Shown in pieces: positions 36,484 to 56,008 of a stretch of 64,000 nt of DNA. The translations under genes were made by a program, and so were the position numbers. Positions within the stretch are counted from its first letter, which is position 1; the number at the start of each line of letters is the position of its first letter. This DNA comes from Setoptus koraiensis (lineage: Eukaryota; Animalia; Arthropoda), in NCBI GenBank assembly GCA_048013815.1, contig CM106586.1, forward strand, positions 2,170,001 to 2,234,000. The letters are read 5' to 3'. The notes under the pieces are model-generated. The model saw only the letters and a list, made by a program, of their open reading frames with translations, had not been told where the DNA came from and searched no databases.

Positions 36484-37879
36484 TTAAGCAAAACAAAATT
36501 GAAAGAAAAGATAATAAAAGATAGCAAGGATTCGAAGATTTCCTGCAGTTGCATTAGTGCTCAACAGTTTATTTGTTGCCGGACAGGAATCAATCTGCAA
36601 AGAACAGGTGAATCAGCAAGCTGCAATATCCTCTCTATATCTCTCACTTGATTTTTGGTGCGGAAAGATCTTTCGAACAATTTGTTGCAATTATTGAATG
36701 ATTGTCGAAACAAGATGTTACTGAAAGATACCAATATTTGTAATAAAGCTTGTTCAATTTAGCTTGTTCAAAGTTACTTAGCCAATGGGTAAAAATGCGC
36801 GACGATATTGAATTTTGTCGAGACCATATGTAGAGATATCATAGTTGTCCAGTAACTGTTAGCAATGCGTTTGAAGGGAATTTGTTTGAAAAAACTTGTT
36901 AGCTTAACGGAAATGAAATGATGTCCCGTAATTCCTCATGATAAGTACTGTTGTGAAGCCGTTCAGACGTACAATGTATTGTAGAGTCACTTTTGTTTAA
37001 CAACTATGATTGATAACTTGTTGTTGTATTCTAAACATAGAACAATTGAACAGTATAATACTTTAATAATGTTTGATGTTGATTAAATATTTCCAACTTA
37101 ACTATTGTTATCTTATAGCTGAACAATGATGTCACCATGTTCAATAAAACAAGTCTTGAATTTACGCTACACGACAATATAGTCATTTCACTTAAAAATA
37201 ACAAAGATTATAACCTTTCATGTCACACTTATGACATGACAAATTCTAGTGGATAGTCTAGTTGATTTGAATAAAAGATGAAACATTCAGCCGATAGGCT
37301 TGTCGCAATGTATATTTGATGTGGAACAATAGATGATTGTAGACAAACAAGCTATGACGTTCGTCCTGTTAATCTATTGAAATATCCCTCTATAAAAGCA
37401 CCTAGGACAGCAACCAAAACAAACCTTTCTCTGAACAAAATATTGATATATCGGACTTAAGGTACGCTGAACGTAGATGACTAACATTCTCTGTGATCTT
37501 TTTGTTGATTCACTTGGTTAGTATTTAGTCATCTGGTCTAGTCTTAGACAAATCAACAGCAGGATAAAGCAATAGATTACCAGGCATTACCAGAGTGAAC
37601 TCTTTTGATACAAACTTGTTGTGCTCAAGTCGGAGTACAGTGAGAGAGCCGAGAATGCGAGATTTACTTTCTATTTGAATATGGGTATGTTTGAGTAACT
37701 AGACAAAGAGGGTTAGATCAAGAGGAAAAATCGGTACATGCCATACCAATTTTTGCACTACCTCTTGATACATTTCTCTGGCCATTGACTGAACAACAAC
37801 GGTATACAACACCATGGAACACACATACAAAACTGCTCCTGCTATCTATTCATCGCAATACCACCTGCTCCCTTTCCAT
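36484..37879 (-). other. Possible multi-exon gene with very short exons and introns, ending in a hydrophobic tail; not in the ORF track
   Basis: Segments 36989-36909, 36855-36778, 36720-36648 and 36594-36484 join in frame across GT-AG gaps of 53, 57 and 53 nt. Further exon-like segments lie upstream, up to an ATG at 37879. No family recognised. Confidence 0.3.
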
Positions 37880-38264
37880 GAGTGCTGTAATTCTTGATTT
37901 CTAGTGATTGATTCTCGCTTTAGCTCGCTTGATTTTTGCTTGATAATTAAGTCAGAATTTGGCTCAAGCATGGAGGTAATAATGTTGCAAGACTGTGCTT
38001 AATTGCTTCAAGTGCTGTCGCTCTCATCAACTAATAATGAGAACACACAGGCAAAGCAAATCATTTGTACGGGTTTGATGTGGAACAAGTAAAACGAGCA
38101 AATCCAAACGAGCTGCTACTTTTTACGCATACACTTTATGTCACGATTTTTTTCTTGCTGTTGGGTCTCTACTATCAGTACTATAGAGCCAAGATAAATG
38201 AGTATATGAATACCGAGGGCATTATAATCAATAGAAATTTGGTCGTCACACGGCCATGCTTTGC

Positions 38265-38938
38265 ATGTTCAATCAATTGAAAGGTTTCTCACAGCGTAAA
38301 CTGAATAAAGTTGAGACAAAAGTAGTAACACCATCAGGTGAGAATTTAGTTGAAAAAAGAGGAGCAAAAGGCCTGCAAGTGCTATCTAGCGATGCTCAAG
38401 GTCAAGAAGAACAAAGAAAGCTAGACTTGCAAGTTGGACTTATAGTACCCGGCTTGTTGATAGGTAAATATCTATTCTCTATTATATAATTGCAAATCAA
38501 AGCTAGCAAACCATGAGTGACTAACTAGTTAATTATCATTTCTCCGGTAATATAGCATCCGATGATGTTGCTCAACACAAGGAAAGTCTGGATACTTATG
38601 GAATAACTCATATATTGAACCTGGCTAGCGATGTTGAAAATAAATATGCTAGTGAATATTGTTACAAGAATGTAGACGTTCAGGACAATCCTGATTTTCA
38701 GTTGTCTCAAGTATACGACGAATGTTTCAATTTCATAGATGAGGGGAAAAAAGCAGGTAATGTTCTTGTTCATTGTAAGGGAACAGTTGGTTTGTCGAGA
38801 TCAACTGCAATCTGTGTTGCCTACTTAATGAAAAGAGAGAAGCTCAACTTTAACGATGCTCTAAACGCCGTCAAGGAGGCAAGATCCTTCGTGCGACCCA
38901 ATGATGGATTCGTGAAACAGTTGAAGGAAGCGCATTAA
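38265..38938 (+). CDS. DUSP19: Atypical dual-specificity phosphatase, DUSP19-like; exons 38265 (or 38256)-38463 and 38556-38938
   Basis: N-terminal LKGFSQRKLNKVETKVVTPSG and DLQVGLIVPGLLI are typical of DUSP19; GITHILNLA, DECFNFIDEG, VLVHC..SRS, AYLM, RPNDGFVKQL; 92-nt phase-1 intron. Confidence 0.88.
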
Positions 38939-39159
38939 AGAGGACTTGTAAGAATCGATGATTTATTCTATCAACAATATTCATGTCGGACAATATTAAC
39001 GTGAAATTGTGTGTCTATATGACTTTCAAAAATGTGTTAGAAATTTATGCAACAATAAAGTACAAAACCAGTGTAATACACTAGTGATGTTAAGAAGGTG
39101 ATTAATCAATGCAGTAATAATACTGATTAGTTTCGACGATTATCGACGTGACGATTGAT

Positions 39160-39525
39160 TGAAAAGAGCGGTACAAACCCGGGAGGGAAAAGTGGGAGCC
39201 TCCCGAGGGGAGGGCAACTCCCCACCTCCGACGATAGATATGGCCAGAATTGCTTATGAATTGCCCGCCATTAGCAACTTGCGCGCATGCTCGGACGTGG
39301 CGATTCTCAGGGCTCGCCCATGGTCGACTTGGGCGTGCCCGTTCAAAATGGACATCGAATGCGCACAAGATATTTTGACAACGAAATTCTCTGAATATGC
39401 GCAAAAGACGAAAATTGGTTCAATAGTTCCATTGGTCAGTGTTGAGAACAACGGAACTTTTGAATTTAGCGGCTACGTCTGCGCATATAGCGAGAGGCAA
39501 ACTTGCGATCATTATGGTACCCAAT
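39160..39525 (-). ncRNA. Candidate structured non-coding RNA (family unassigned)
   Basis: GC-rich island in AT-rich DNA with nested helices: ATATGCGCA 39395-39403 / TGCGCATAT 39480-39488, GACG/CGTC, TTCAA/TTGAA, AGTTCCATTG/CAACGGAACT, and a GC hairpin at 39191-39225. Confidence 0.35.
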
Positions 39526-39750
39526 ATCGCGTATAAAAATAGTAACGGTCAATTGTGTGAATTTGAATATTTATCTAATTTTTACTATTCAACAATAGTA
39601 ATCAGGACAGGCATTTCATTTTAGAAATCGTTCAATATAACTAATTGACATATCAACAATCAATAATTATCATCTCCCCTGACAAGCATCCGATAGATAA
39701 GCTAATTTGACTAAATACTAACATAATTAATAATAAATAAAAAAATAAAT

Positions 39751-40170
39751 ATGACTCTAGAAACAAAGGAACAAGTGACCGCTGTAGAGCAACCAACAGC
39801 CACCGACGAACAAACTGAACAGACAAATGACACTCAACAAGTAAAGTCATCGCCCGCTCAAAAATTCTGGGCCAAATTACTAAAGAAGGGTCCTACCCAA
39901 AGCCCCGCAGTCAAGGCAGCTAAAGCCGCGAAAGCCGCAGCAAAAGCCGCTGACGATGCAGCTAAATCAGCTGCTGTTGCAAGGAAGGCTGCTGACGATG
40001 CAGCTAAGGCCGCCACTGCCGCTGCTAAAGCAGAAGAGGAGGCCAAAAAAAGGGAAGAAGAGCAGCTAAGGCAACAAAAAGAGCAGCAAGAAGAACAACA
40101 GAAGCAACAAGAGGCACAGCAGACCGAGCAACCCACCAAGGTTGAAGTGACACCTCAGCCCACCGAATGA
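39751..40170 (+). CDS. Small Ala/Lys/Glu/Gln-rich predicted helical protein (139 aa), unknown function
   Basis: Clean ATG-to-TGA ORF after an A-rich leader; repeated KAADDAAK and KAAKAA motifs with varied codon third positions; no recognisable domain. Confidence 0.7.
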   Translation: MTLETKEQVTAVEQPTATDEQTEQTNDTQQVKSSPAQKFWAKLLKKGPTQSPAVKAAKAAKAAAKAADDAAKSAAVARKAADDAAKAATAAAKAEEEAKKREEEQLRQQKEQQEEQQKQQEAQQTEQPTKVEVTPQPTE

Positions 40171-40441
40171 GATCAACACTGAATGTCCATAACAACCACG
40201 CATTTTATACACCATTTTCAATCAATAATCAACATGTAAATCAGCGTATTAATATCTACAGGACATCAATAAATTGACCATGACACTATGATTTTATACC
40301 AATATTATTACCTGACATTATATTCTGATACAATAGACGCAGAGCACATTTTAATCGCATTCGTGTATCTCCTACTTGACTTCAACATATTTATTCTCGA
40401 ATGTAGTACCTTAATGCACTGGTTTGTTGAAAATCAACTAG

Positions 40442-42367
40442 TTACAAGAAATGTAGCTTGTTTCTGAGCCGGGCATGTGGGGCCTGTTTCAGGTGGTCCC
40501 CCACCAAGCGGACTAATTTCGTGGCATACTGACACGGAGCTGGTACGCTCATGAAATCTCTATTGAAGTAAATTTGACACAGTTTCAAAGCAAGATCTTG
40601 ATGCTCTGTTACACCATACTTCGTCTCATCCAGAGCTACTCTGTACAAAGTCGGATTGACAAACCGTCTATCTGATTTCGCGCTCGTCATTAAGAATCCC
40701 TTCGAAATTTCCCGCGAATCTATAACAGTTCCAGCTACAGAATTCTCTACCTTAGCATCAGCGTCCACTTGTGGTACATATTTGAAAAATCTCGCTGAAT
40801 TATTTCTATCAACGTGTACTATAGATAACAAAATCCTCAGGCTTGCATGCCATTTCTCCAGAGTAGGCTTCAAGATTTCAAGAAGCTTGTCAGGATTGTA
40901 ATGTTTCATAATACCCTTAACTCTCTTATTCTCCTCATAGTACAATATGATCTTATGAGGAACCAATGAGTTTTCATTTCTATATCTTGCAACTGCCAAA
41001 CTCACAAATTTTGCCACGAGACTCAACAGAGAGCACTCGTCAAAATTTGGCTCCGCGTCGGAATACCATTTCGTCAAATTAGCATTTAGAGACGAACAGA
41101 ATGCTATGGAGTATTTATATGGTAACCTATTCCGATCACAGTGTAAAGCGAAAGAGCATACTATCATATGACGAGGTAAACTCTTCAGAGACCATGGTTC
41201 GGCCCCGGTTTTAGCCGCAATTTGAATTGCGACTCGTTCCAATAAGCCTTTTGAACTCTCAGAGTTTTGTGCGAGACTTTTCAATGATTGTATTTTGATG
41301 ACTTGCGATGGGACTCCCTTGACAACGGTAAGCAGCTTCTTTATACTATCATACCTTTCTTTCTTATCTGAAGGTACAACGATGAGTACGAGAGAGCATT
41401 GATCTATGTTGAGGAGTGTTCGGATGGTTGAATCCAGCGACCCAATTGATCTAAAATTCTCAACTTCCGAATATGTACATTTGTATGTAAAACCTAAATG
41501 TTCTAACATTTTGGGTAGGTCAAACTTAACAAATTCTTTTAACAGAATATCCATTTCTTTATAAGTAACAATTGTTAGATTACCAACGATCGCTCTACCA
41601 GGAGTGAAAGCTCGAGGGGACATACAGTTGTCAATGTTCAATCTACAATCTTTTTTCATGGTGCCAAGACGTTTGACATCTAGTATGCAAGAAGACACTG
41701 TGATTAGTTGGCCATTTTTTGTCGAACAGCCGTTCTTCTGATTCGTGGGTCTAAAATTGTTTAGCCCATAAAGCGATTCCTGGATAGTTTCATAGAACTT
41801 TTTAATAGACTCAAATTCTTGCGAGGCACTAGATCTTGCTGATGGATACTGTCTGTCTAGTAGACCCAATAAAAAGCAAAATTCCGGTATTAGATAGATA
41901 GGATTTGTAGTTGAGTTTATAGACTTCCCATATTCCTTCACCAGAAGAAGAGGTTGACACGTACTTCGATTACTCAATTTAATGTTGTATTTGGCTTCTA
42001 AGTAATTTTTGAACGAGACAACAAGACCATCTTTTGTAGTGAATTCTGAGAAAGGAGTTTTTGTACAGTCGACATCTATAATTTTATAGATTTTGTTATT
42101 GTACAATGTAACAACTTTTTTGTGTCTTAAAGTTTCTTTTATGTGGATCCGAAAGAGGTTTATGGCGACTCTCTGAAATATTTCAACCATGAAATATTCG
42201 CAAGAGTATTTTTGCACGTACAATACCCTAGGTGTAATACTAACTTGCGCACCATGACGTATAACGGATAGTCCATCTACAACATCAATTCCAAACTTGT
42301 GACATATAGTTCGTAGTGATTTAAAGTCGAAATAGTCTCCATGAAGTTTGTTCCACAAATTATACAT
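40442..42367 (-). CDS. Divergent PIWI-clade Argonaute (partial L1, PAZ, MID, PIWI), single ORF of 641 aa; 5' end probably cut by the assembly artefact
   Basis: PAZ: VVTLYNNKIYKI.DVD..KTP.SEF, SFKNY...KYNI, QPLL, YLIPEFC.L.GL. MID: RYDSIKK..VPSQV, QIAAKTG.EPW. PIWI: GTVID, VNPTLY, SVPAPCQYA.KL, LRNKLHFL C-terminus typical of the PIWI clade. Confidence 0.92.
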   Translation of the reverse strand: MYNLWNKLHGDYFDFKSLRTICHKFGIDVVDGLSVIRHGAQVSITPRVLYVQKYSCEYFMVEIFQRVAINLFRIHIKETLRHKKVVTLYNNKIYKIIDVDCTKTPFSEFTTKDGLVVSFKNYLEAKYNIKLSNRSTCQPLLLVKEYGKSINSTTNPIYLIPEFCFLLGLLDRQYPSARSSASQEFESIKKFYETIQESLYGLNNFRPTNQKNGCSTKNGQLITVSSCILDVKRLGTMKKDCRLNIDNCMSPRAFTPGRAIVGNLTIVTYKEMDILLKEFVKFDLPKMLEHLGFTYKCTYSEVENFRSIGSLDSTIRTLLNIDQCSLVLIVVPSDKKERYDSIKKLLTVVKGVPSQVIKIQSLKSLAQNSESSKGLLERVAIQIAAKTGAEPWSLKSLPRHMIVCSFALHCDRNRLPYKYSIAFCSSLNANLTKWYSDAEPNFDECSLLSLVAKFVSLAVARYRNENSLVPHKIILYYEENKRVKGIMKHYNPDKLLEILKPTLEKWHASLRILLSIVHVDRNNSARFFKYVPQVDADAKVENSVAGTVIDSREISKGFLMTSAKSDRRFVNPTLYRVALDETKYGVTEHQDLALKLCQIYFNRDFMSVPAPCQYATKLVRLVGDHLKQAPHARLRNKLHFL

Positions 42368-42406
42368 ATCCTCTCACAAACAACAAAGAGAAAGAAAAGA
42401 AGAGAT
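42368..42406 (+). other. Degraded PacBio SMRTbell hairpin adapter (technical sequence)
   Basis: atcctctcacaaacaacaaagagaaagaaaagaagagat aligns to the adapter ATCTCTCTCAACAACAACAACGGAGGAGGAGGAAAAGAGAGAGAT (recalled from memory) and lies exactly at the fold-back axis. Confidence 0.88.
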
Positions 42407-45400
42407 ATGTATACATGATTGAACAAAACTTCATGGACTATTTCGACTTTAAATCACTACACTATATGTCACATTTGAATTGATGTTAATGACTATCCGT
42501 TATACGTCATGTGCGCAAGTATATACACCTAGGTATTGTACTGCAAAAATAATCTTCGAATATTTCATGTTGAAATATTCAGAAGTCGCCATAAACCTCT
42601 TTCGATCCACATAAAAAAACTTTAAACACAAAAAAGTTTACATTGACAATAACAAAATCTATAAAATTAAGATTCACTGTACAAAAACTCCTTCTCAGAA
42701 TTCACTACAAAGAGGTCTTGTTTCTCGTTCAAAAACTTAGAAGCCAAATACAACATAAATTATAATCGAAGTACTGTCAACCTCTTCTTCGTGAAGGAAT
42801 ATGGAAGTCTATAAACTCAACTACAATCCTATCTATCTAATACCGAATTTGCTTTTTATTGTCTACTAACAACAGTATCCATCAGCAAATCTATCCTCCA
42901 AAATTTGAGTCTATTAAAAAGTTCTATAAACTATCCAAATCGCTTTATGCTAACAATTTAGACCCACGAATCAAAGAACGCTGTTCGACAAAAAATGCCA
43001 ACTAATCACAGTGTCTTCTGCATACTAGATTCAAACGTCTTGCACCATAAAAAAGATTTAATTGAACATTGACAACTTAGTCCCCTCGACTTCACTCTGT
43101 AGAGCGATCTTGTAATCTAACAATTTTACTTATAAAAATGATATTCTGTTAAAAGAATTGTTAAGTTTGACCTACCCAAAATGTTAGAACATTTAGGTTT
43201 TACATACAAATGTACATATCGGAAGTTGAATTTTAGATCAATTGGTCCGATCAACCATCCGAACACTCCTCAACATAGATCAATCTCTCTCGTACTCATC
43301 TTGTACCTTCAGATAAGAAAAAAGTATGATATATAAAAAGCGCTTACCTTGTCAAGAGTCCCATCGCAAGTCATCAAATACAATCATGAAAATCTCGCAC
43401 AAAACTCTAAGTCAAAAGCTTATTGAACGATGCCAATTCAAATTGCGCTAAACCGCCGAACCATGCTCTGAAGAGTTTACCTCGTCATATGATAGATCTC
43501 TTTCGCTTACACTGTGATCAATAGTACCATATAAATACTCCATAGCATTCTGTTCGTCTCTAAATGCAATTGACGAAATGTATTCCGACGCGACCAAATT
43601 TGACGAGTGCTCTCTTTAGTCTCTCAAAATTTGTATTCATTGCAAGTATAAAATAAAACTCTTGTCCTCATAAATCATATTGTACTATGAGAAATAAAGA
43701 TTAAGTATTAGAAACATTACAATCCTACAACTTCTTAAATCTTGAAGCCTACTCGAAATGCATGCAAGCCTAGATTTTGTTATACTATATACACGTTTGA
43801 TAAAATATTCACGAGATTTTTCAAATATTACCACAAGTGACCTGATCTAAGTAAGAAATGTCTGTACTGGAACTGTTATAGATCGCGAAATTTCGAAGGA
43901 TGCTTATGACGAGCGCGAAATCAGATAACGTTTTCAATCCGACTTGTACAATACTCTATGAACAATATGTTAACAGACATCAAATCTTGCTTTGAAACTG
44001 TGCAAATTTACTTCAATAAGATTTCATACGTACCAGCTCCGTTCATATGCCACGAAATTATCCGCTGTGGTGACCACCTGAAACAGCCCCACATCCCGCT
44101 CAGAACAACTACATTTCTTGTAACTAGTTATTTTCAACAAACCAGTCATTAAGTACTACATTCGAGAATAAATATGAGTCATGAATACACAATCATTAAA
44201 AATGTCTCGCTCTATTGTATCAGAATATAATGTCAGTAATAATATTGTATAAAATCATATGTTATTCAATTTATTATGTCCTGTAATATTAATACGCTTT
44301 ACATGCTGATTATTATTGAAAATGTATAAAATCTGGTTTTATGACATTCATGTTATCCATCGTGCTGAGTTCCTGCAACGTGTGGTTGCTCGTCTCTGTC
44401 CTCTTTTGCTTCTTGTTCTCTTGCTCTCTTTTGTGCCTTAGCTGCTTCTTCCCTTTTTTGGCACTCCTCTTCTGCTTAGCACGGCATGCACCGTACTGCA
44501 TCTCAGCACCTCCTTCACAGCAGCTGATTTACTGCATCGCACCTTTTGCTGCGCTTCGCGCTTTAGCTGCCTTGACGCGGCTTTGGGAGACCCTTCTTTA
44601 TAATTTGCCCAGAATTTTGACGCGATGACTTACTTGTTATGTCATTTGTCTGTTTCATTTGTTCTCGTGCTGTTGTTGCTCTACAGCGTCACTTGTTCCT
44701 TTGTTTCTAGAGTCATATTTATTTTTTATTTATATCATTTATGTTATATTTATCAATTACTTATCGATCGATGCTTGTCATGAGAGATTAGTATTGTTGA
44801 TATGTCAATATCATATTGACGATTCTAAAATAAATCCTGTTCTATTACTATGTTAATAGTAAAAATTAGATAAATATTCAAATCACACAATGACCGTACT
44901 ATTTTTATACGATATGTACCATATGATAGCAATTTGCCTCTCCCTATAGCCAACGTACCGCTAAATTCAAAAGTTCCGTGTTCTCACACGGACCAATAAC
45001 TATTGAACCAATTTTCGTCTTTTGCGCATATGTAAGAATTCGTTGTCAAATATCTTGTCCATTCATGTCCATTTGAACGCACCCCAATCGACCATGGCGA
45101 CCCTGAAATCGCCACGCCGAGCATGCCCAAGTTGCTAATGCGCATTCATAACAATTTTGCCATACTATCGTCGAGTGGATTCCCTCCCCTCGAGCTCCCA
45201 CTTTTCCCTCCCGTTGTACCGCTCTTTTCAATCAATCGTCACATCGATAATCGTCGAAACTAATCAGTATTATTACTGCATTGATTAATCACCTTCTTAA
45301 CATCACTAGTGTATTACACTGGTTTTGTACTTTATTGTTGCATAAATTTCTAACACATTTTTGAAAGTCATATAGACACACAATTTCACGTTAATATTGT

Positions 45401-46938
45401 CCGACATGAATATTGTTGATAGAATAAATCATCGATTCTTACAAGTCCTCTTTAATGCGCTTCCTTCAACTGTTTCACGAATCCATCATTGGGTCGCACG
45501 AAGGATCTTGCCTCCTTGACGGCGTTTAGAGCATCGTTAAAGTTGAGCTTCTCTCTTTTCATTAAGTAGGCAACACAGATTGCAGTTGATCTCGACAAAC
45601 CAACTGTTCCCTTACAATGAACAAGAACATTACCTGCTTTTTTCCCCTCATCTATGAAATTGAAACATTCGTCGTATACTTGAGACAACTGAAAATCAGG
45701 ATTGTCCTGAACGTCTACATTCTTGTAACAATATTCACTAGCATATTTATTTTCAACATCGCTAGCCAGGTTCAATATATAGTTATTCCATATATCCAAC
45801 TTTCCTTGTGTTGACAACATCATCATGCTATATTACCGAAAATATAATTAACTATTATCACTCATTTTGCTAGCTTTGATGCAATTATATAAAGAATAAT
45901 ATGTACCTATCAACAAGCCGTACTATATATCCAACTGCAATCTAGTCTTGTTCTTCTGACCTTACATCGCTAATATACGTGCACCTTTGCTCCTCTTTTT
46001 TCAACTAAATTCTCACCTGATGTGTACTACTTTTGCTCACTTTATCTTTACGCTAAAACCTGTCAATGATTAACACAAAGTATCGTGTACGACAAGTTCT
46101 ATTGATTATAATGCCCTCTATTCATATACTCTTTATCTTGGCTCTATATACTGATATAGAACCCAACAGCAAAAAAAATCGTGACATAAATGTATCTAAA
46201 AATAGCAGCTCGTTTTGATTTGCTCGTTTTACTTGTTCCACATCAAACCCGTACAAATGTTTGCTTGCTGTGTTCTCATTATTAGTGAGACGACAGCACT
46301 GAACAATTAACACATCTGCAACATTATACCTCCATCTAGCCCAATTCTACTAATTATCAACAAAAATCAACGAGCTAAAGCAGAATCAATCACGAAAATC
46401 AAAATTACAGCACTCATGAAAGCAGTGATTCATGAATAGATACAGAGCAGTTTTGTATGTGTTCCATGTGTGTATACCGTGTTGTTCAGTCAGCCAAAAA
46501 TTATCAAAAGGTATCAAAAGTGGTATGCATACCGATTTTCCTCTTGAACTAACCCTCTTTGTCTATTACTCAAACATACCCATATTCAATAGAAATAAAT
46601 CTCGCATCCGCTCTCTCACTGTACTCCGACTTGAGCACAACAAGTGTATCAAAATTCACTCTGAATGCCTGTAATCTATTCTTATCCTGCTGTATTTGTC
46701 TAAGACTAACCAATACTAAATACTAACCAATAAATCAACAAAAGATCACAGAGAATTATCATCTACGTCACGTACCTTATAGTCCGAGAGATGCAAGATG
46801 TTTTCAGAGAAAGTATGTTTGGTTCTGGCCGAGCTTTTATAGAGGATATTGCAATAGTAGTACACGACGACTCATAGCGTGTGCTACAATCATCTATTTG
46901 CCACAGCAATAGATACATTGCTCACAGTATGTATACAT
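42407..46938 (-). repeat. Error-rich inverted copy of about 37300-42367 (second pass of the same read); includes a polished copy of DUSP19 exon 2 at about 45452-45830
   Basis: Colinear reverse complement of the PIWI, Ala/Lys ORF, GC island and DUSP19 region; about 10% shorter through single-base deletions, mostly of G. Confidence 0.93.
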
Positions 46939-46974
46939 AGCCTCTCTACCACAACATCGAATTAGAGATGAGAT
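46939..46974 (+). other. Second, more degraded SMRTbell adapter remnant
   Basis: agcctctctaccacaacatcgaattagagatgagat at the second turning point, flanked like the first by TATACAT and ATGTATA. Confidence 0.7.
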
Positions 46975-49900
46975 ATGTATACAATATACAATGTATATGA
47001 TGTGAACAATAGAGATGTAAAGACATATCAACTATGACGTCGTAATCCCGTTAATCGATTAAAGATCCTCTATAAAAGCACGACCTAGTACTGCAACCAA
47101 ACAAACCTGCTCTGATAACAAAGATTGATATATGACGTAAGGTAGCCGCTGAACGAGATGACTAACATTCTCTGATACTTTTGTTGAGCACTGTGTTAGT
47201 ATATATCTCTGTCTCGCGTAGACAAATCTACAGCAGAGAAAGCAAGAGATTACCAGCATTACCACAGTAACTCTTGTGATACAAACTTTGTGCTCAATCG
47301 AGTACAGAAGACCGAGAATCAGATTTACTTCTATTTAATATTATGTTATAACTAACAAAAGGTTAGATCAGAAAAAATCGTAAATGCATACCATTTTGCA
47401 CTACCTCTTATACATTTCTCTGCCATGACTGAACAACAACGTATACAACACCATGAACACACCATACAAACTGCTCCCTCTATCTATTCATCGCAATACC
47501 ACCTGCTCCCTTCATGAGTGCTGAATTCTGATTCTAGATGACTCCGTTACTCCCTTGATTTGCTTGATATTATCAGAATTTCTCAGCTGATAATAAGTGC
47601 AAGACTGCTAATTGCTCATCTTCGCTCTCAACTAATATAAACACACATCTAAGCAATCATTTGTACGGTTTGATTGAACAAGTAAAACGACAAATCCAAA
47701 CAGCTGCTACTTTTACGCATACACTTTATTCACATTTTTTTCTTCTGTTTCTCACTATCAGTACTATAGAGCCAATAAATAGTATATGATACCGAGCATA
47801 TATATACAATAAAATTTGTCGTCACACGCATACTTGCATTTCAATCAATGAAAGTCTCACAGCGTAACTGAATATTGAGACAAAAGTATAGACACCATCA
47901 TGAATTTAGTGAAAAAGAGACATAACCGCTATACTATCTACGATGCTCAATCAAGAAAACAAAGAAAGCTAACTTCAATTACTTATAGAACCGCTTGTTG
48001 ATAGTAAATATCTATTCTCTATTATTAATTGCCAATCAAACGACAAACCATGATACTAACTATTATTATCATTTCTCCGTAATATACATCCAATTTGCTC
48101 AACACAAAAATCTGATACTTATGATACTCTATATTGAACCTGCTAGCGATTTAAAATAAATATCTAGATATTGTACAAAATGTAACGTCAGAACATCCTA
48201 TTTCAGTGTCTCAGATACACGAATTTCAATTCATAGATGAGAAAAAGCATATGTTCTTGTTCATGTAAGGACATTGTTTCGAATCAACTCAATCTGTGCC
48301 TACTTAATATAAAAGACTCAACTTTACGATCGCGTCTAAACGCCGTCAAGAGCAAGATCCTCGTGCACCCAATATGATCGGAAACAGTTGAAGAACGCAT
48401 TATAAGACTTGTAAGAATCGATGATTTATGTCTATCAACAATATCATGTCGACAATATTAACGAATTGTGTCTATATGACTTTCAAATGTGTTAGAAATT
48501 TATGCAACAATAAAGTACAAAACCATGTAATACACTAGTATTGAAGAAGTGATTAATCAATGCAGAATAATACTGATATTTCGACGATTATCTACTGACA
48601 TTAGTGAAAAAGCGTACAAACCCGGAGGAAAGTGAGCCTCCCAGAGCAACTCCCCACACTCGACATAGATATGGCCAAAATTGCTTATGAATCGCCCCCC
48701 ATTACAACTTGCGCGCATGCTCGACTGCGATCTCAGCTCGCCATGTCGACTTGCGTCCCGTTCAAAATGGACATCGAATGCCACAAGATATTTGACAACG
48801 AAATTCTCTAAATATGCGCAAAAGACGAAAATTGTTCAATAGTTCCATTGGTCAGTGTTGAGAACAAACGAACTTTTGAATTTAGCGCTACGTCTGCGCA
48901 TATAGAGAGGCAACTTCGATCATTAGTACCCAATATCGCTATAAAAATATAACGTCAATTGTGTAATTTGAATATTTATCTAATTTTATTATTCAACAAT
49001 AGTAATCAGAACAGCATTTCATTTTAGAAATCGCTCAATATGACTAATTGACAGATCAACAATCAATAATTATCAGCTCCCCTGACAAGCATCCGATAGA
49101 TAAGCTAATTGACTAATACTAACATAATTGATAATAAATAAAAAAAAATATGACTCTAAAACAAAGGAACAATGACCGCTGTAGAGCAACCAACAGCCAC
49201 CGACGAACAAACTGAACAACAAATACACTCAACAAGTAAAGTCATCGCCCCTCAAAAATTCTGCCAAATACTAAAAAGGTCCTACCCAAACCCCGCAGTC
49301 AAGCACTAAACCGCGAAAGCCGCAGCAAAAGCCGCTGACGATGCACTAAATCACTGCTGTTGCAAGAAGCTGCTGACGATGCAGCTAAGGCTGCCACTGC
49401 CGCTGCTAAAGCAAAGAGAGCCAAAAAAAGAAGAAACACTAAGGCAACAAAAAGACAGCAAGAAGAACAACAAACAACAAGAGCACAGCAACCGACAACC
49501 CACCAAGGTTGAAGTGACACCTCAGCCCACCGAATGAGATCAACACTGAATGTCCATAACAACCACCATTTTATACACCATTTTCAATCAATAATCAGCA
49601 TTAAACGTATAATATCACAACATCATAAATGACCATAACACTATGATTTTATACCAATATTATTACCTGACATTATATTCTATACAATAACGCAGACACA
49701 TTTTAATCGCATTCGTATCTCCTACTTGACTTCAACATATTTATTCTCGAATGTATACTTTAATGCACTGTTTTGTTGAAAATCAACTAGTTACAAAATG
49801 ACTGTTTTCTGACCGCATTGCCTTTTCAGGTGGTCCCCCACCAAGCGACTAATTTCGTGCATACTGACACGGAGCTGGTACGCTCATGAATCTCTATTGA

Positions 49901-51502
49901 AGTAAATTTGACACAGTTTCAAAGCAAATCTTATGCTCTGTTACACCATACTTCGCTCATCCAGACTACTCTGTACAAAGTCGGATTGACAAACCGTCTA
50001 TCTGATTTCGCCTCGTCATTAAATCCCTTCGAAATTTCCCCGCAATCTATAACATTCCACTACAATTCACTACCTTAGCATCACGTCCACTTGTGGTACA
50101 TATTTGAAAAATCTCGCTAATTATTTCTATCAACGTTACTATAGATAACAAAATCCTCACTTGCATGCCATTTCTCCAGGGAGACAGAGCACGAGGTAGC
50201 TTCAAATTCAAGAACTTGTCAGATTGTAATTTTCATATACCCTTAACTCTCTTATTCTCCTCATAGTACAATATGATCTTATGAGAACCATGATTTTCAT
50301 TTCTAAATCTTGCAACTGCCAAACTCACAATTTTGCCACGAACTCAACAGAAGCACTCGTCAAAATTTGCTCCGCTCGGAATACCATTTCTCAAATAGCA
50401 TTAGAGACAACAGAATGCTATGAGTATTTATATGTAACCTATTCCATCACAGTGTAAAGCGAAAAGCATACTATCATATGACGAGTAAACTCTTCAGAGA
50501 CCATGTTCGCCCCGTTTTTAGCCGCAATTGAATTGCACTCGTTCCAATAAGCTTTGAACGCTCAGAGTTTTGTGCGAACTTTTCATGATTGTATTTTATG
50601 ACTACGATGACTGTCCTTGACAAACGTAACAGCGTCTTTATACTATCATACCTTTCTTCTGTATCTGAAGTACAACATGAGTACGAGAAGCATGATCTAT
50701 TAGAGAGTTCGATGGTTGAATCCACGACCCAATTGATCTAAAATTCTCACTTCCAATATGTACATTGTATGTAAACCTAAATTTCTAACATTTTGGTAGT
50801 CAAACTTAACAAATTCTTTTAACAGAATATCCATTTCTTTATAAGTAACAATTGTTAGATACCAACGATCGCTCTACAGTGAAGCTCGAGACATACATTC
50901 AATTTCAATCTACAATCGTTTTTCATGGTGCCAAACGTTGACATCTAATCAAGAAACACTGATTATTGCCATTTTTGTCAACACCGTCTTCATCTAGGTC
51001 TAATTGTTACCCATAAACGATTGCCTGATATTTCATAAACTTTTATAGACGCAAATCTTCGACACTAATCTGCTGATGATACTTCTTCTATAGACCCAAT
51101 AAAAACAAAATTCCGTATTAGATAATAGATTGTATAGTTTAGACGTCCCATATTCCTTCACAAAAAGTACACTACTTCATTACTCAATTAATGTATTTCT
51201 CTAAGGAATTTTAACGAACACAAACCATCTTTGTAGTGAATGCGAAAAGAGTTTTGTACATCGACATCTATAATTTTATAGATTTGTATTGTACAATGTA
51301 ACAACTTTTTGTCTTAAAGTTTCTTTAGTGATCCGAAAGAGTTATGCACTCTCTGAAATATTTCAACCATGAAATATCGCAAGAGTTTTTGCACGTACAA
51401 TACCCTAGTGTAATACTAACTTGCCACCATACGTAAACATATCCATCTACACATCATCCAAACTTTACAATAGTTCTTGATTGATCAAATTCTCCATAGT
51501 TT
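46975..51502 (+). repeat. Error-rich direct copy of about 37300-42345 (third pass)
   Basis: Colinear with the clean copy, frameshifted throughout, same deletion bias, and ends at almost the same position as pass 1. Confidence 0.93.
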
Positions 51503-52001
51503 NNNNNNNNNNNNNNNNNNNNNNNNNNNNNNNNNNNNNNNNNNNNNNNNNNNNNNNNNNNNNNNNNNNNNNNNNNNNNNNNNNNNNNNNNNNNNNNNNN
51601 NNNNNNNNNNNNNNNNNNNNNNNNNNNNNNNNNNNNNNNNNNNNNNNNNNNNNNNNNNNNNNNNNNNNNNNNNNNNNNNNNNNNNNNNNNNNNNNNNNNN
51701 NNNNNNNNNNNNNNNNNNNNNNNNNNNNNNNNNNNNNNNNNNNNNNNNNNNNNNNNNNNNNNNNNNNNNNNNNNNNNNNNNNNNNNNNNNNNNNNNNNNN
51801 NNNNNNNNNNNNNNNNNNNNNNNNNNNNNNNNNNNNNNNNNNNNNNNNNNNNNNNNNNNNNNNNNNNNNNNNNNNNNNNNNNNNNNNNNNNNNNNNNNNN
51901 NNNNNNNNNNNNNNNNNNNNNNNNNNNNNNNNNNNNNNNNNNNNNNNNNNNNNNNNNNNNNNNNNNNNNNNNNNNNNNNNNNNNNNNNNNNNNNNNNNNN
52001 N
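51503..52001. other. Assembly gap (about 500 N)
   Basis: Run of N. Confidence 1.
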
Positions 52002-52003
52002 NC

Positions 52004-55000
52004 GGAAACAAAGGTATTGATGACGATGATGACGATGATGATAACGATGGTACCGCTGATGACGATGATGATGATGACGATGACGCAGCAGATATAGTTG
52101 TGAACAAGAGAAAAGTCAAATCTACAACATCTAATAACAAAGCGAGACAGAAAGGATCAACAGCAAAGAAACAACCAAAGGTGGATGACGATGACGACGA
52201 TGATGACGAAGATGACGACGATGAAGATGAAATTATTGAGGACATATCAGATGCTGAGACTTTGAACAAACTGATTGAGGCAAACGATCATTTGATGGTG
52301 TTCTTTTATGACAAAGAAGACCCAAAAATATTTCAAAAAGCTAGTGATATTCTCAAACAATTAGAAACAATCGATGATGATTGTGATGACTATGATATTG
52401 GCTTTGTTAAAATCGACAATGATCAGGTGGCTAGAGAGTTTGGCCTTATGGATGAATTGCCGGCTTTGGTCTACTTTGAACATCAGTTGCCCTCAATCTA
52501 CGAAGGTAGTTATAAACCTGTTAGCCAGGTATTGGATTGGATACTAAAGCAAAAAAGTGAAGACACTATAGAAGAGGTAACTGATGAGATTTTAGAAAAA
52601 TTATTACTGAAACATCCTTATGTTCTAGTATTCTTCGCGCCAAACTCTTGTACAACAGAATGTGAAATCATTTTACAAGGTCTAGAGAGTATTGACGATG
52701 ACACAGATGATTACGGTATTTTGTTTGTTACGACAGACGATATGGATCTAGCTAGAAAGAGGGCCAAAATAACCAAATTTCCTACTTTGGTTTTATTCAG
52801 AAACAATGGTGACTCTAAAACATATAAAGGAAACTTAAAGAAACCGGATGAAGTTTTAAAATGGGTCACATCAGAAGAGGCGCTAGACATAACAAATGCG
52901 ATTGATCTGGTTAATAGGAAGATGTTTGAAAAGTTATTAAATACATCCAACTATTTAGCAGTTGTTTTCATCAAGGACAAATGTAAGAATTGTGACAAAG
53001 TTTTACAAACATTGGAGAATATTGATCATTTAACCGAGGATAACGATATAGATTTGATTAAGATCAATGACGTTAAATTGGCTCGCGAGTTCAACTTGGT
53101 AGACAATTCGCTGCCTGCATTAGTATTCTTTAAACATCGTTACCCTCATATATATCAAGGTAATCTGTTGGCAAAAGACGCTGATCAACAAGTGTTGAAA
53201 TGGTTGAACGAAGAAAAAAATAATCAAGAGGATATCATCGAGTTAGTATCGGGTAATATGTTGGATATTTTATTGGACAACATGAAACATTTGGTTGTAT
53301 TCTTCTATGATCCGAAATTGTGCGGTCAAGATTCATCGTCCATTGTTAATGCCCAGCAACAGGCTGCAAATCTAAAGTGCAAAAGAGTATTACAAGAACT
53401 GGAAAATATAGACGATGAAACAGATGATAATGGTATACAATTTGTCAAATGCGAAGACACTAAATACGCTAAATCGTTGGGTATTAGTCAGTTGCCAGCA
53501 CTTGTTTATTTCGAAGAATCATCATCGGCTCCAAGTATCTACTTAGGTGATCTGGAGGAGGAGGAGAGAGTCTTGGAATGGTTGCTGAAGCAAAAAAATG
53601 AGGACACTATTGAGAACATTAATAAGGATATACTGAATAAAATGATAACCCAACAACAGAAAGGTACCGACGGCGATGGCGATGAAGACGATGATGATGT
53701 TCAAAAGGAATATGTAGCGTGTTTATTTTACAAATTAAATCACGAAGATAGCGATGATATTGTTGAAACATTGGAACATATCGACGATGATCTGAGTGAA
53801 TATGACATCCATCTTGTCAAAATGGCCGACGATTTGATAGCAAAAAAATATGGTATTCGTCATCCACCGGGGCTGGTATTGTTTCGTCATGGTCTACCTC
53901 TCAAGTACGAGGGCGATCTATTCGATACCGATGAGCTAATAGAGTGGCTGACGAATCCATCAACATTGGAAACTAATGATGCTATAGAGCAGGTTAATGA
54001 AAAAATGTTTGAAAGATTCAGAGTGAACACAAACTATTTGGCTGTTTTGTTTTACAGTGAAACAAATGCTTGCAAGCAATGCAAAAGAGTAATGGAGGAA
54101 CTGGAGAAAATCGACGACGAAGCCAGTGCGGCTGGTATCAGATTCATTAAGGTGGACAATATGGATATCGCGCGCCGTTATGGAATTCACGCTCTTCCAG
54201 CGTTGGTATTCATATCAACGCCATCAGCAACAACATCGACCAATATTGGACAAGATCAGAGTCAGGCTATAATATATGCTGGTGATTTGAAGAAGGGCGA
54301 TAAGATACTAGAATGGCTAATGGAACAAAAGTCGCCCAATCTTCATCAAATCGAAGATTTAAACGGACGCCAATGTAGAGAATTGATCAAATCAAGAGAG
54401 CATGTGGCTATATTCTTTTACAACAATGACAACGACGAAGATTCAACGGATGATTGCGATGATCAATGTGCTATTATATTGGCTGGTCTAGAAAATATTG
54501 AGGGTGATTGTAAAAAGCATTCGATTACTTTGGTTAAAACAAATGATAAATCTATGCTGAAAGAATACGGTATTCAGCGAGATGCAGCATTAGTTTACTT
54601 CGAGCATGGCAATCAGCCTAGCATCTATCAGGGCGATTTGAATGCTGAAGAAGATTGTCTCGATTGGCTGATTCAGCAAAAAACAGAGGACACAATTGAA
54701 GAAGTTAACAGGGGATTATTTGAGCATCTAATTGAATCAAGTCACTATTTGGTTGCATTATTTTACAAGCCACATTGTAAATCTTGTACGGTTGCTTTGG
54801 AGAAACTAGAATCTATTGATGATGATTGTGACCTGTATGGTATCACTATGGTCAAGATACAGGATATACCATTGGCTAAACGATACGGTATTAAGACATT
54901 TCCAGCCTTAGTCTATTTCCGCAATGGGAATCCATTAATATTTGATGGTGATCTTCGTAATGAGCAGCAGGTACTAGAGTGGTTAATTGAGGATGAAAAC

Positions 55001-56008
55001 CGTGAATTAAGTGACGAAATCGAGGATATAAATGGAAAAATGTTGGACAAATTAATAGATTCTTCACCATTTTTGGCAGCCTTATTCTACGATGACGACT
55101 GTCAAGAGTGTCCTAAAGTACTGCGTGAACTGGAGAAAATAGACGATGACACTGATCTGTTTGGCATTGATTTCGTTAAAATTAATGACTTTGCTGCGGC
55201 TAGAAAATACAATGTTCATTCGTTTCCGACACTGGTTTACTTTAGAAAACAATCGCCATCCTATTACGACGGTGATCTTTTAGACGAGGACAGTGTATTG
55301 AGATGGTTGACCAGTAATGACGTGTTTGAGTTAGAAGATGAAATAGAAGAGGTCAATAGGCGCATGTTGGACAAATTAATGGAAACTAATGATTACATCG
55401 CAGTTTACTTTTGTGAGTACCAATTGAACATTTACATATCGATAGAGATATCTGCATCTAGTGCTCCAATTAATTAATTAATTTATTCCTTCATCACACT
55501 AATATGAAAAAACTTGAAATCAGATGACAAAAATTGCCCCACTTGTGATGTCATACTCAAAGAACTCGAGGGTATAGATGATGAAGCAGACAGTCTTGAC
55601 ATTATGTTTGTCAAAATTAAAGATATGAATTATGCCAAAAAATACGGTATAACTCAGGTGCCTAGTTTAGTTTATTTTAGGAAGAAATTTCCATCCATTT
55701 ACAGAGGTAGGTCAACAACAAACAGTTTTAGATTGATTGCGACTAAAATTTACTTATAGATGTTACCTTGATTATCACATTATTACTTACTCACACCAAC
55801 TTACATCACATCTCAATCATATCATCCATCTTATTATATCTTTGTAGGCGATTTAATGAGAGAGGAGAAAGTATTAGAATGGTTGCGCAAGAATAGATAC
55901 CGCAATCCAGAATTAAATTTGTTTATGTACGCATTGTTCAGCATAACAATATCATTTATTTTTTACACAATATTCCTAATGTTTTGTGTCAAAAAGAAAC
56001 AAGAGTAA
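52004..56008 (+). CDS. Acidic membrane protein with at least 10 tandem thioredoxin-like (PDI/calsequestrin-type) domains and a C-terminal TM helix; 5' end in the gap; exons <52004-55412, 55524-55706, 55848-56008
   Basis: Repeat unit IE.V...L..L....YL.V.FY...C..C...L..LE.IDDD.D..GI..VK.....A..YGI...P.LVYF....P..Y.GDL..E..VL.WL; phase-1 GT-AG introns; ends ..ELNLFMYALFSITISFIFYTIFLMFCVKKKQE*. Confidence 0.9.

Follow-up and report, generated by a model that had tools for sequence, protein, structure and literature searches.

Passes over one PacBio molecule are joined into a palindromic read when the adapter between them is not detected. Such 'missed adapters' are a recognised read error (PMC7671305), and subreads of this kind have been patched with MARVEL. 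At the level of assemblies, HiFiAdapterFilt distinguishes a class D, in which an adapter lies inside a contig and the neighbouring sequence is inverted at the contig end. The same work gives the SMRTbell adapter as a 45-mer (PMC8864876). Imperfect sequence can also enter an assembly by another way, as what is put in by long-read gap closers has an identity of about 88% (PMC8848313).

Here we describe a repeated 9-kb stretch in the assembly of Setoptus koraiensis (GCA_048013815.1). It is not a real genomic feature under any reading. It is almost certainly an assembly artefact, formed by one PacBio molecule that was read in three passes and whose adapters were left in the sequence. The window, which is the whole stretch of DNA analysed, comprises 64,000 nt of CM106586.1 (forward strand, 2,170,001-2,234,000), and all coordinates are positions in this window.

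Results

The features of the stretch are as follows.

37305-42349, no strand: clean genomic segment of 5,045 bp, the SMRTbell insert; both noisy copies align exactly here
42350-42367, plus strand: flank before adapter 1, 18 non-genomic letters; run contigs stop matching at 42349
42368-42406, plus strand: SMRTbell adapter 1, 39 letters left; reverse complement of the published 45-mer
42407-46921, plus strand: pass 2, inverted re-read of 42349-37305; begins with ~19 letters of re-read flank
45214-45780, plus strand: error-free patch within pass 2; 100% complementary to 38610-39176
46922-46938, plus strand: non-genomic flank preceding adapter 2; aligns to 42350-42367
46939-46974, plus strand: putative SMRTbell adapter 2, poorly read; orientation as adapter 1
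46975-51502, plus strand: pass 3, direct re-read of 37305-42349; the first ~14 letters are flank
51503-52002, no strand: scaffold gap of 500 N; the sole N run in the window

Self-BLAST of the window reveals two large matches. The inverted match extends over 42404-46921 against 42370-37305 with 85.96% identity and 560 gap columns, and the direct match over 46989-51476 against 37306-42312 with 85.0% identity and 577 gap columns. No further large repeats are found in the window by this comparison. With 4518 letters against 5066 (inverted) and 4488 against 5007 (direct), both noisy copies are about 10.5% shorter than the clean copy. The passes follow each other in the order clean (plus orientation), inverted and direct, and all three span 37305-42349. 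Alignment of the ends places the end of pass 3 exactly at the equivalent of 42349, after which the gap begins. The original prediction had described this layout of clean copy, adapter, inverted copy, adapter, direct copy and gap, with both noisy copies about 10% shorter and derived from one interval, and it is borne out on each of these points.

The noisy copies have little in common with the rest of the window at the level of exact words; for 42350-45200, the share of 31-mers that recur there is only 2.2%. The ORF listing contains no ORF of at least 120 aa in these copies outside the perfect patch. This patch covers 567 nt without any error, and the local identity falls abruptly to about 84% on both sides of it. 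The clean segment itself holds a small ORF on the plus strand, an Ala/Lys-rich ORF and a Piwi gene on the minus strand.

The deletions in the noisy passes are dominated by a single base. In the plus orientation of the window, pass 2 has lost 379 of 989 G (38%), together with 7.8% of T, 3.4% of A and 0.9% of C. The corresponding losses in pass 3 are 362 of 971 G (37%), 8.6% of T, 4.0% of A and 1.4% of C. Thus, G makes up 67% and 64% of all deletions in pass 2 and pass 3, and its loss compared with that of C is highly significant in Fisher's exact test (p = 7e-118 and 2e-106, respectively). The commonest substitution is T>G, which occurs 23 times in each pass. GC skew is negative over all of 42.5-51.5 kb, with no change of sign between the two noisy copies, one inverted and one direct. 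The error bias follows the read orientation and not the template orientation in both passes, as had been predicted. A mutated inverted repeat is excluded, because the lost base would become C in the inverted copy. The earlier argument against pseudogenisation holds for the same reason, as both noisy copies have lost G on one written strand despite their opposite orientations.

The errors of pass 2 and pass 3 are independent of each other. Positions that differ from the clean copy in both passes number 89, compared with 82 expected, and the identity between the two passes (75.6%) equals the product of 0.876 and 0.866.

At the first junction the adapter is clear. The sequence at 42368-42406 matches 37 of the 45 letters of the adapter with a local score of 50, which is the highest in the entire window, where the background reaches no more than 33-34. 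Five of its seven deletions are G, so that the remnant carries the same G loss as the passes, in line with the original prediction. The second site (46939-46974), which had been proposed as a further remnant, matches 29 of 45 letters with a local score of 23, a score reached by 4.6% of background tiles. Taken alone, this match is weak and not significant. It is supported by its position exactly between pass 2 and pass 3 and by the alignment of junction 2 to junction 1 (score 63), which suggest a second, poorly read adapter. At both junctions the reverse complement of the 45-mer scores higher than the forward form (50 versus at most 34 at junction 1, 23 versus 18 at junction 2). One orientation for two adapters is expected of a polymerase reading round a circle.

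About 18 letters adjoining each adapter are also non-genomic. The flank at 42350-42367 aligns to its counterpart at junction 2, and all four flank readings share the core ATGTATACAT. No match is found between the flank at 46922-46938 and the clean sequence left of 37305. The flank at 42350-42367 is probably a barcode or adapter stem of raw-read quality; the 17-19 flank letters gave no convincing fit to the PacBio barcodes with which they were compared.

Independent support comes from four public runs, which were used as Logan contigs instead of raw reads and describe coverage at the k-mer and contig level only. For the clean stretch 38000-42367, a fraction of 0.89-0.91 of the 31-mers is present in these runs, and over 41500-42349 the long contig pieces show no differences. 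Contigs of all four runs match up to exactly 42349 and then turn into unlike sequence. None of them extends past 42349 into adapter or pass 2 sequence. Over the noisy copy, run contigs align only with many gaps that restore the missing G, and at the contig and k-mer level no public runs are listed for 45800-51502. The layout, the G loss, adapter 1 and the run contigs all agree with the earlier proposal of alternating passes round one SMRTbell with an under-called base.

The Piwi gene on the minus strand is truncated at its 5' end by the artefact, and the ATG at which it seems to start is part of the non-genomic letters. Relatives of the full Piwi ORF are only distant (at most 28% identity), and none were found for its 210-aa end piece. 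The sequence beyond 42349 is therefore not recoverable via relatives of this ORF. An 80-nt run contig joins 41286 to 41667 and skips 380 nt. An intron was rejected as the explanation of this join, since neither strand has GT-AG ends, 380 nt is not divisible by 3, and an ORF runs without interruption across the junction. A short diverged inverted Piwi copy, with 41667-41794 joined to 41258-41286 and a 380-nt deletion, can tentatively be placed about 0.4 kb past the contig end, although we regard its existence as somewhat doubtful. This putative fragment would be separate from the artefact. The intervals 41287-41666 and 41795-42349 are lacking or diverged in it. A reading of pass 2 as a true inverted paralogue was considered and rejected, as pass 2 follows the clean copy collinearly through both of these intervals. 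If the fragment is true, such a hairpin-forming copy next to the Piwi gene could give rise to small RNAs.

Discussion

The structure can be explained by the following course of events. A 5,045-bp fragment (37305-42349) would have been capped with hairpin SMRTbell adapters, and one polymerase would have read round the circle, over the forward strand, an adapter, the reverse strand, an adapter and the forward strand again. The G pulses in this well would have been badly under-called, with about 38% of G dropped, T sometimes called as G and C hardly touched. A dim or depleted G nucleotide channel may be the cause; our search for literature on the Sequel colour and amplitude scheme that would explain G dropout together with T>G found nothing usable. 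With such noise, two adapters would have been missed by the software, and three passes kept as one 'subread' that was cut only at the third adapter. The first pass would then have aligned to the contig end, and the overhang, consisting of flank, adapter, pass 2, adapter and pass 3, would have been taken as new sequence extending into the gap. It could have entered either through single-read depth in the assembler consensus or through a long-read gap closer. A gap of 500 N is typical of Hi-C scaffolders. If the present gap is of this kind, the assembler's own consensus would be the source of the tail. The overhang would have been beyond later polishing, since genuine reads are placed on the clean copy. 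The error-free patch at 45214-45780 counts against a plain raw read and would require an additional step of polishing, which is unproven; some later correction would thus have touched the read.

A real palindromic amplification of the 5-kb segment, mutationally decayed to pseudogenes, would also place three copies of one segment in the deposited sequence, and the run contigs do give hints that a short inverted piece of the Piwi gene truly exists past 42349. The bias of a decayed inverted copy would however be complementary, whereas here G is lost twice on the same written strand, and no mutational process is known to remove 38% of a single nucleotide. With a synthetic adapter at the centre, errors as expected if the clean copy had been read twice independently, and a sequence that is absent from the independent runs, we give this amplification practically no chance.

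The palindrome could instead have been present in the library and not in the genome. Fold-back chimeras from whole-genome amplification (phi29/MDA) would have this effect. Long reads of amplified DNA often contain palindromes (PMC6218980), and a low DNA input is conceivable because the genome is apparently small. At the turn of such a chimera no SMRTbell adapter is expected, but adapter 1 is clear, and three passes with identical ends at 37305 and 42349 and a junction 2 like junction 1 point to a circle that was re-read. The G dropout would be a feature of base calling in either case. Overall, an amplification chimera appears very unlikely. An unsplit Nanopore 2D read, or a read otherwise linked by a hairpin, would likewise yield an inverted copy from its template and complement. 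These reads consist of two passes and not three, and the junction matches the PacBio adapter specifically, which makes this origin exceedingly improbable. A PacBio molecule read in three passes, with its adapters left in, accounts for the structure best.

The value of this finding lies in quality control. About 9.15 kb of the scaffold is synthetic and should be removed. The original prediction gave the size correctly, at about 9 kb, but not the start: the insert ends at 42349 and not at 42367, and the stretch to remove is accordingly 42350-51502 (9,153 nt). Besides adapter sequence, it holds two ghost copies of three genes, ridden with frameshifts, and if left in place it would enter the annotation as pseudogenes, as a palindrome or as a gene amplification. 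A Piwi-family N-terminus or start codon read from this assembly is unsafe. For screening, the signature is a GC skew that is strongly negative and keeps its sign in the inverted copy, a shortening by about 10%, and a gap alongside.

A comparison with the known artefacts shows partial similarity to each of them. Like the palindromes of whole-genome amplification treated by Pacasus, this one is artificial and lies within one long read; unlike it, those palindromes lack an adapter where they turn and mostly consist of just two arms (PMC6218980). The inserts of LR_Gapcloser, of PBJelly and of TGS-GapCloser (88-95% identity, PMC8848313) resemble it in that sequence of about 86% identity lies beside a gap and abuts polished sequence, although a gap closer is here only a candidate route. 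The 'missed adapter' CLR subreads patched by MARVEL (PMC7671305) share with it an undetected adapter and passes joined as a palindromic read. They are usually split or outvoted at normal coverage, while the present read survived because it overhangs the contig end at single-read depth. In contrast to class D of HiFiAdapterFilt, the source here is a noisy continuous long read and not HiFi, and there are two adapters, three passes and an extreme dropout of one base. The adapters, with 37 and 29 of 45 letters left, probably carry too many deletions for a stringent screen and slipped through for this reason. As in class D, an adapter lies inside the contig with the neighbouring sequence inverted at the contig end, and the remedy is the same, namely trimming at the adapter (PMC8864876).

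Layout of the copies

The triple-pass structure in the window is almost certainly an unsplit SMRTbell read that was left in the assembly and not a biological feature, as the original prediction had proposed for 42368-51502. Self-comparison of the window shows that a clean copy (37305-42349) is followed by two noisy copies of the same segment. The inverted one (pass 2) aligns at 42404-46921 with 42370-37305 at 85.96% identity and 560 gap columns, and the direct one (pass 3) aligns at 46989-51476 with 37306-42312 at 85.0% identity and 577 gap columns. No large repeats beyond these three copies are found in the window by this comparison. The predicted order of clean copy, adapter, inverted copy, adapter, direct copy and gap is correct, and the noisy copies (4518 and 4488 nt against 5066 and 5007 nt in the clean sequence) are each shortened by about 10.5%, close to the expected 10%. 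The last letter of pass 3 corresponds exactly to clean position 42349, the insert end just ahead of the flank, and the sole N run of the window (500 N at 51503-52002) comes next. Such an end point is expected if the software detected a third adapter and trimmed the read at it.

Adapter remnants at the junctions

The two junctions were compared with the 45-nt SMRTbell adapter sequence (PMC8864876), which contains 12 G. At junction 1 (42368-42406), between the clean copy and pass 2, the adapter reverse complement is found with 37 of 45 letters matching. Its local score of 50 is the top of the 64-kb window on both strands, where the background maximum is 33-34. Five of the seven deleted letters are G, so the G loss claimed for the adapter remnants is seen here. 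The adapter predicted at junction 2 (46939-46974) is weaker: the match covers 29 of 45 letters and its local score is 23, which is not significant by itself, since 4.6% of background tiles reach it. This junction falls precisely where one pass gives way to the next, and it runs in the same direction as junction 1. The two junctions also align with each other (score 63, about 70 letters), and this alignment takes in 17-19 letters flanking the adapter on either side. These flanks are alike:

42350-42367, flank of 17-19 letters, left of junction 1
42407-42425, flank of 17-19 letters, right of junction 1
46922-46938, flank of 17-19 letters, left of junction 2
46975-46988, flank of about 14 letters, right of junction 2

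All four share the palindromic core ATGTATACAT. The flanks find no match in the genome at the left end, and at the right end independent contigs cease matching before the flank. At both insert ends they may represent a barcode or else an extended stem of the adapter.

Error profile of passes 2 and 3

Each noisy copy was aligned to its template in the orientation written in the window. Pass 2 differs by 565 deletions, 17 insertions and 49 substitutions, and pass 3 by 564 deletions, 45 insertions and 67 substitutions; T>G is the top substitution in either copy (23 in each).

Letters deleted in the noisy copies, by template letter
G: pass 2, 379/989 (38%); pass 3, 362/971 (37%)
T: pass 2, 7.8%; pass 3, 8.6%
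A: pass 2, 3.4%; pass 3, 4.0%
C: pass 2, 0.9%; pass 3, 1.4%

The excess of G over C deletion is strong in pass 2 (p = 7e-118) and in pass 3 (p = 2e-106), which bears out the predicted G loss in read orientation on both passes. GC skew is negative all along 42.5-51.5 kb and around zero in the clean copy. On the written strand the lost letter does not change with the direction of the template, which marks the loss as a property of a read, not of a genome. In decayed genomic DNA, the inverted copy would lose C on the written strand, and the original prediction was right to set pseudogenisation aside. The errors are also independent between the copies. Clean positions that differ in both number 89, against 82 expected by chance, and the 75.6% identity between pass 2 and pass 3 in the self-comparison equals 0.876 × 0.866. 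Each pass is thus a noisy reading of the clean sequence in its own right, not a copy of the other pass.

Independent sequencing runs

Four public sequencing runs (X1-X4) were available as Logan contigs. The tables of X2 and X3 are identical and those of X1 and X4 are also alike, so that the independence amounts to at least two data sets rather than four; X2 and X3 may represent a duplicate deposit of a single data set. Between 0.89 and 0.91 of the sampled 31-mers of 38000-42367 are present in the four runs. For 45800-51502 the 31-mer search lists no run, and 3.9% of its 31-mers recur elsewhere in the window, less than the 5% needed for listing. When contigs of the four runs were aligned on 41500-47400, those of all runs follow the clean copy up to 42349 precisely, the long pieces having zero differences, and then run into unlike sequence; none enters the adapter. 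Contig depth is zero across most of the noisy copy; de Bruijn contigs show presence rather than absence, and the picture is consistent. Where clean-locus contigs align on the noisy copy, for example at 45780-45920, their differences are a series of inserted G.

Alternative explanations

A real amplification that has since decayed is hardly credible, given the G loss irrespective of orientation, the synthetic adapter, the independent errors of the copies and the lack of independent support. A fold-back chimera formed during amplification is very unlikely: its turn would lack an adapter, and three passes sharing the same end points would not result. An origin as a Nanopore hairpin read is extremely improbable, since such a read comprises two passes and carries a different adapter.

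Consequences for the gene models

In line with the original prediction of about 9 kb, 42350-51502 (9,153 nt) should be removed. Two ORFs adjoin the affected region:

40442-42367, - strand, Piwi-family ORF with PAZ and Piwi domains
52003-55477, + strand, ORF of 1125 aa starting directly after the gap; Pfam gives several thioredoxin-type domains and an N-terminal domain like that of TXNDC16

The Piwi-family ORF has distant relatives only (at most 28% identity among the relatives found). It runs into the artefact, and the ATG that it seems to have, at 42365-42367, belongs to the non-genomic flank. The PAZ domain is preceded by only about 60 residues, so the gene's real 5' portion is missing from the assembly; its N-terminus is unsafe to read from GCA_048013815.1. 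The 1125-aa ORF has poly-Asp coding repeats at 52009-52240, and its own 5' end may likewise be truncated by the gap.

Public contigs extend past 42349 near the Piwi-family gene. A 1,111-nt contig of X1 and X4 spans 41716-42349, continues with 398 nt absent from the stretch and ends in an inverted, about 90% identical copy of 41716-41794. A 321-nt contig of X2 and X3 carries, within 199 nt beyond 42349, a 30-nt piece that is the reverse complement of about 41497-41526. Contig depth is doubled at 41688-41745. In a further contig, 80 nt long, 41258-41286 is linked directly to 41667-41717; an intron at this join was rejected, as it has no GT-AG ends and its 380 nt are not a multiple of 3. Taken as a whole, these observations point to a genuine inverted copy, short and diverged, of part of the Piwi gene a little past the contig end. 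This fragment and pass 2 are different things: pass 2 stays collinear with the clean copy through parts missing from the fragment.

An error-free patch in pass 2

Within pass 2, 45214-45780 is 100% complementary to 38610-39176 over 567 nt, with abrupt edges beyond which identity is back to about 84% (84-88% in the rest of pass 2). An error-free stretch of this length is impossible for a raw read, so some later correction acted here, probably partial polishing. ORFs of at least 120 aa are absent from the noisy copies except inside this patch. Contig depth over the clean counterpart of the patch (raised across about 38335-39163) is about twice that of the Piwi region: 235-247 vs 108-125 in X1 and X4, and in X2 35.6 vs 11-21. 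Flanks that occur nowhere in the window are present on some of the contigs here. Together, depth and foreign flanks indicate that a second copy of the segment is probably present elsewhere in the genome or missing from the assembly. At 45243 (clean 39147), the public contigs carry an alternative letter (about half of the depth in X1, 212/342 in X4, all in X2 and X3), which is an ordinary polymorphism of the clean segment.

Proposed origin

The unsplit SMRTbell read would have arisen from one molecule with a 5,045-bp insert (37305-42349) read around at least three times, in a well where G was badly under-called and two adapters were missed amid the noise. The palindromic 'subread' would then have been aligned by its first pass to the contig end and its overhang accepted as an extension into the gap, the tail being added by a gap closer or by the assembler's own single-read consensus. 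For the G dropout, we suspect a dim or depleted G channel, with T and G presumably sharing one detection colour. Our literature search on this cause and on a shared T-G colour found nothing usable. The finding serves as a quality-control flag and offers a simple screen for the rest of the assembly. Every element of the proposed course of events has been described in the literature: failure to detect adapters is a known kind of large-scale error in reads (PMC7671305), and sequence inserted by long-read gap closers has about 88-95% identity (PMC8848313).
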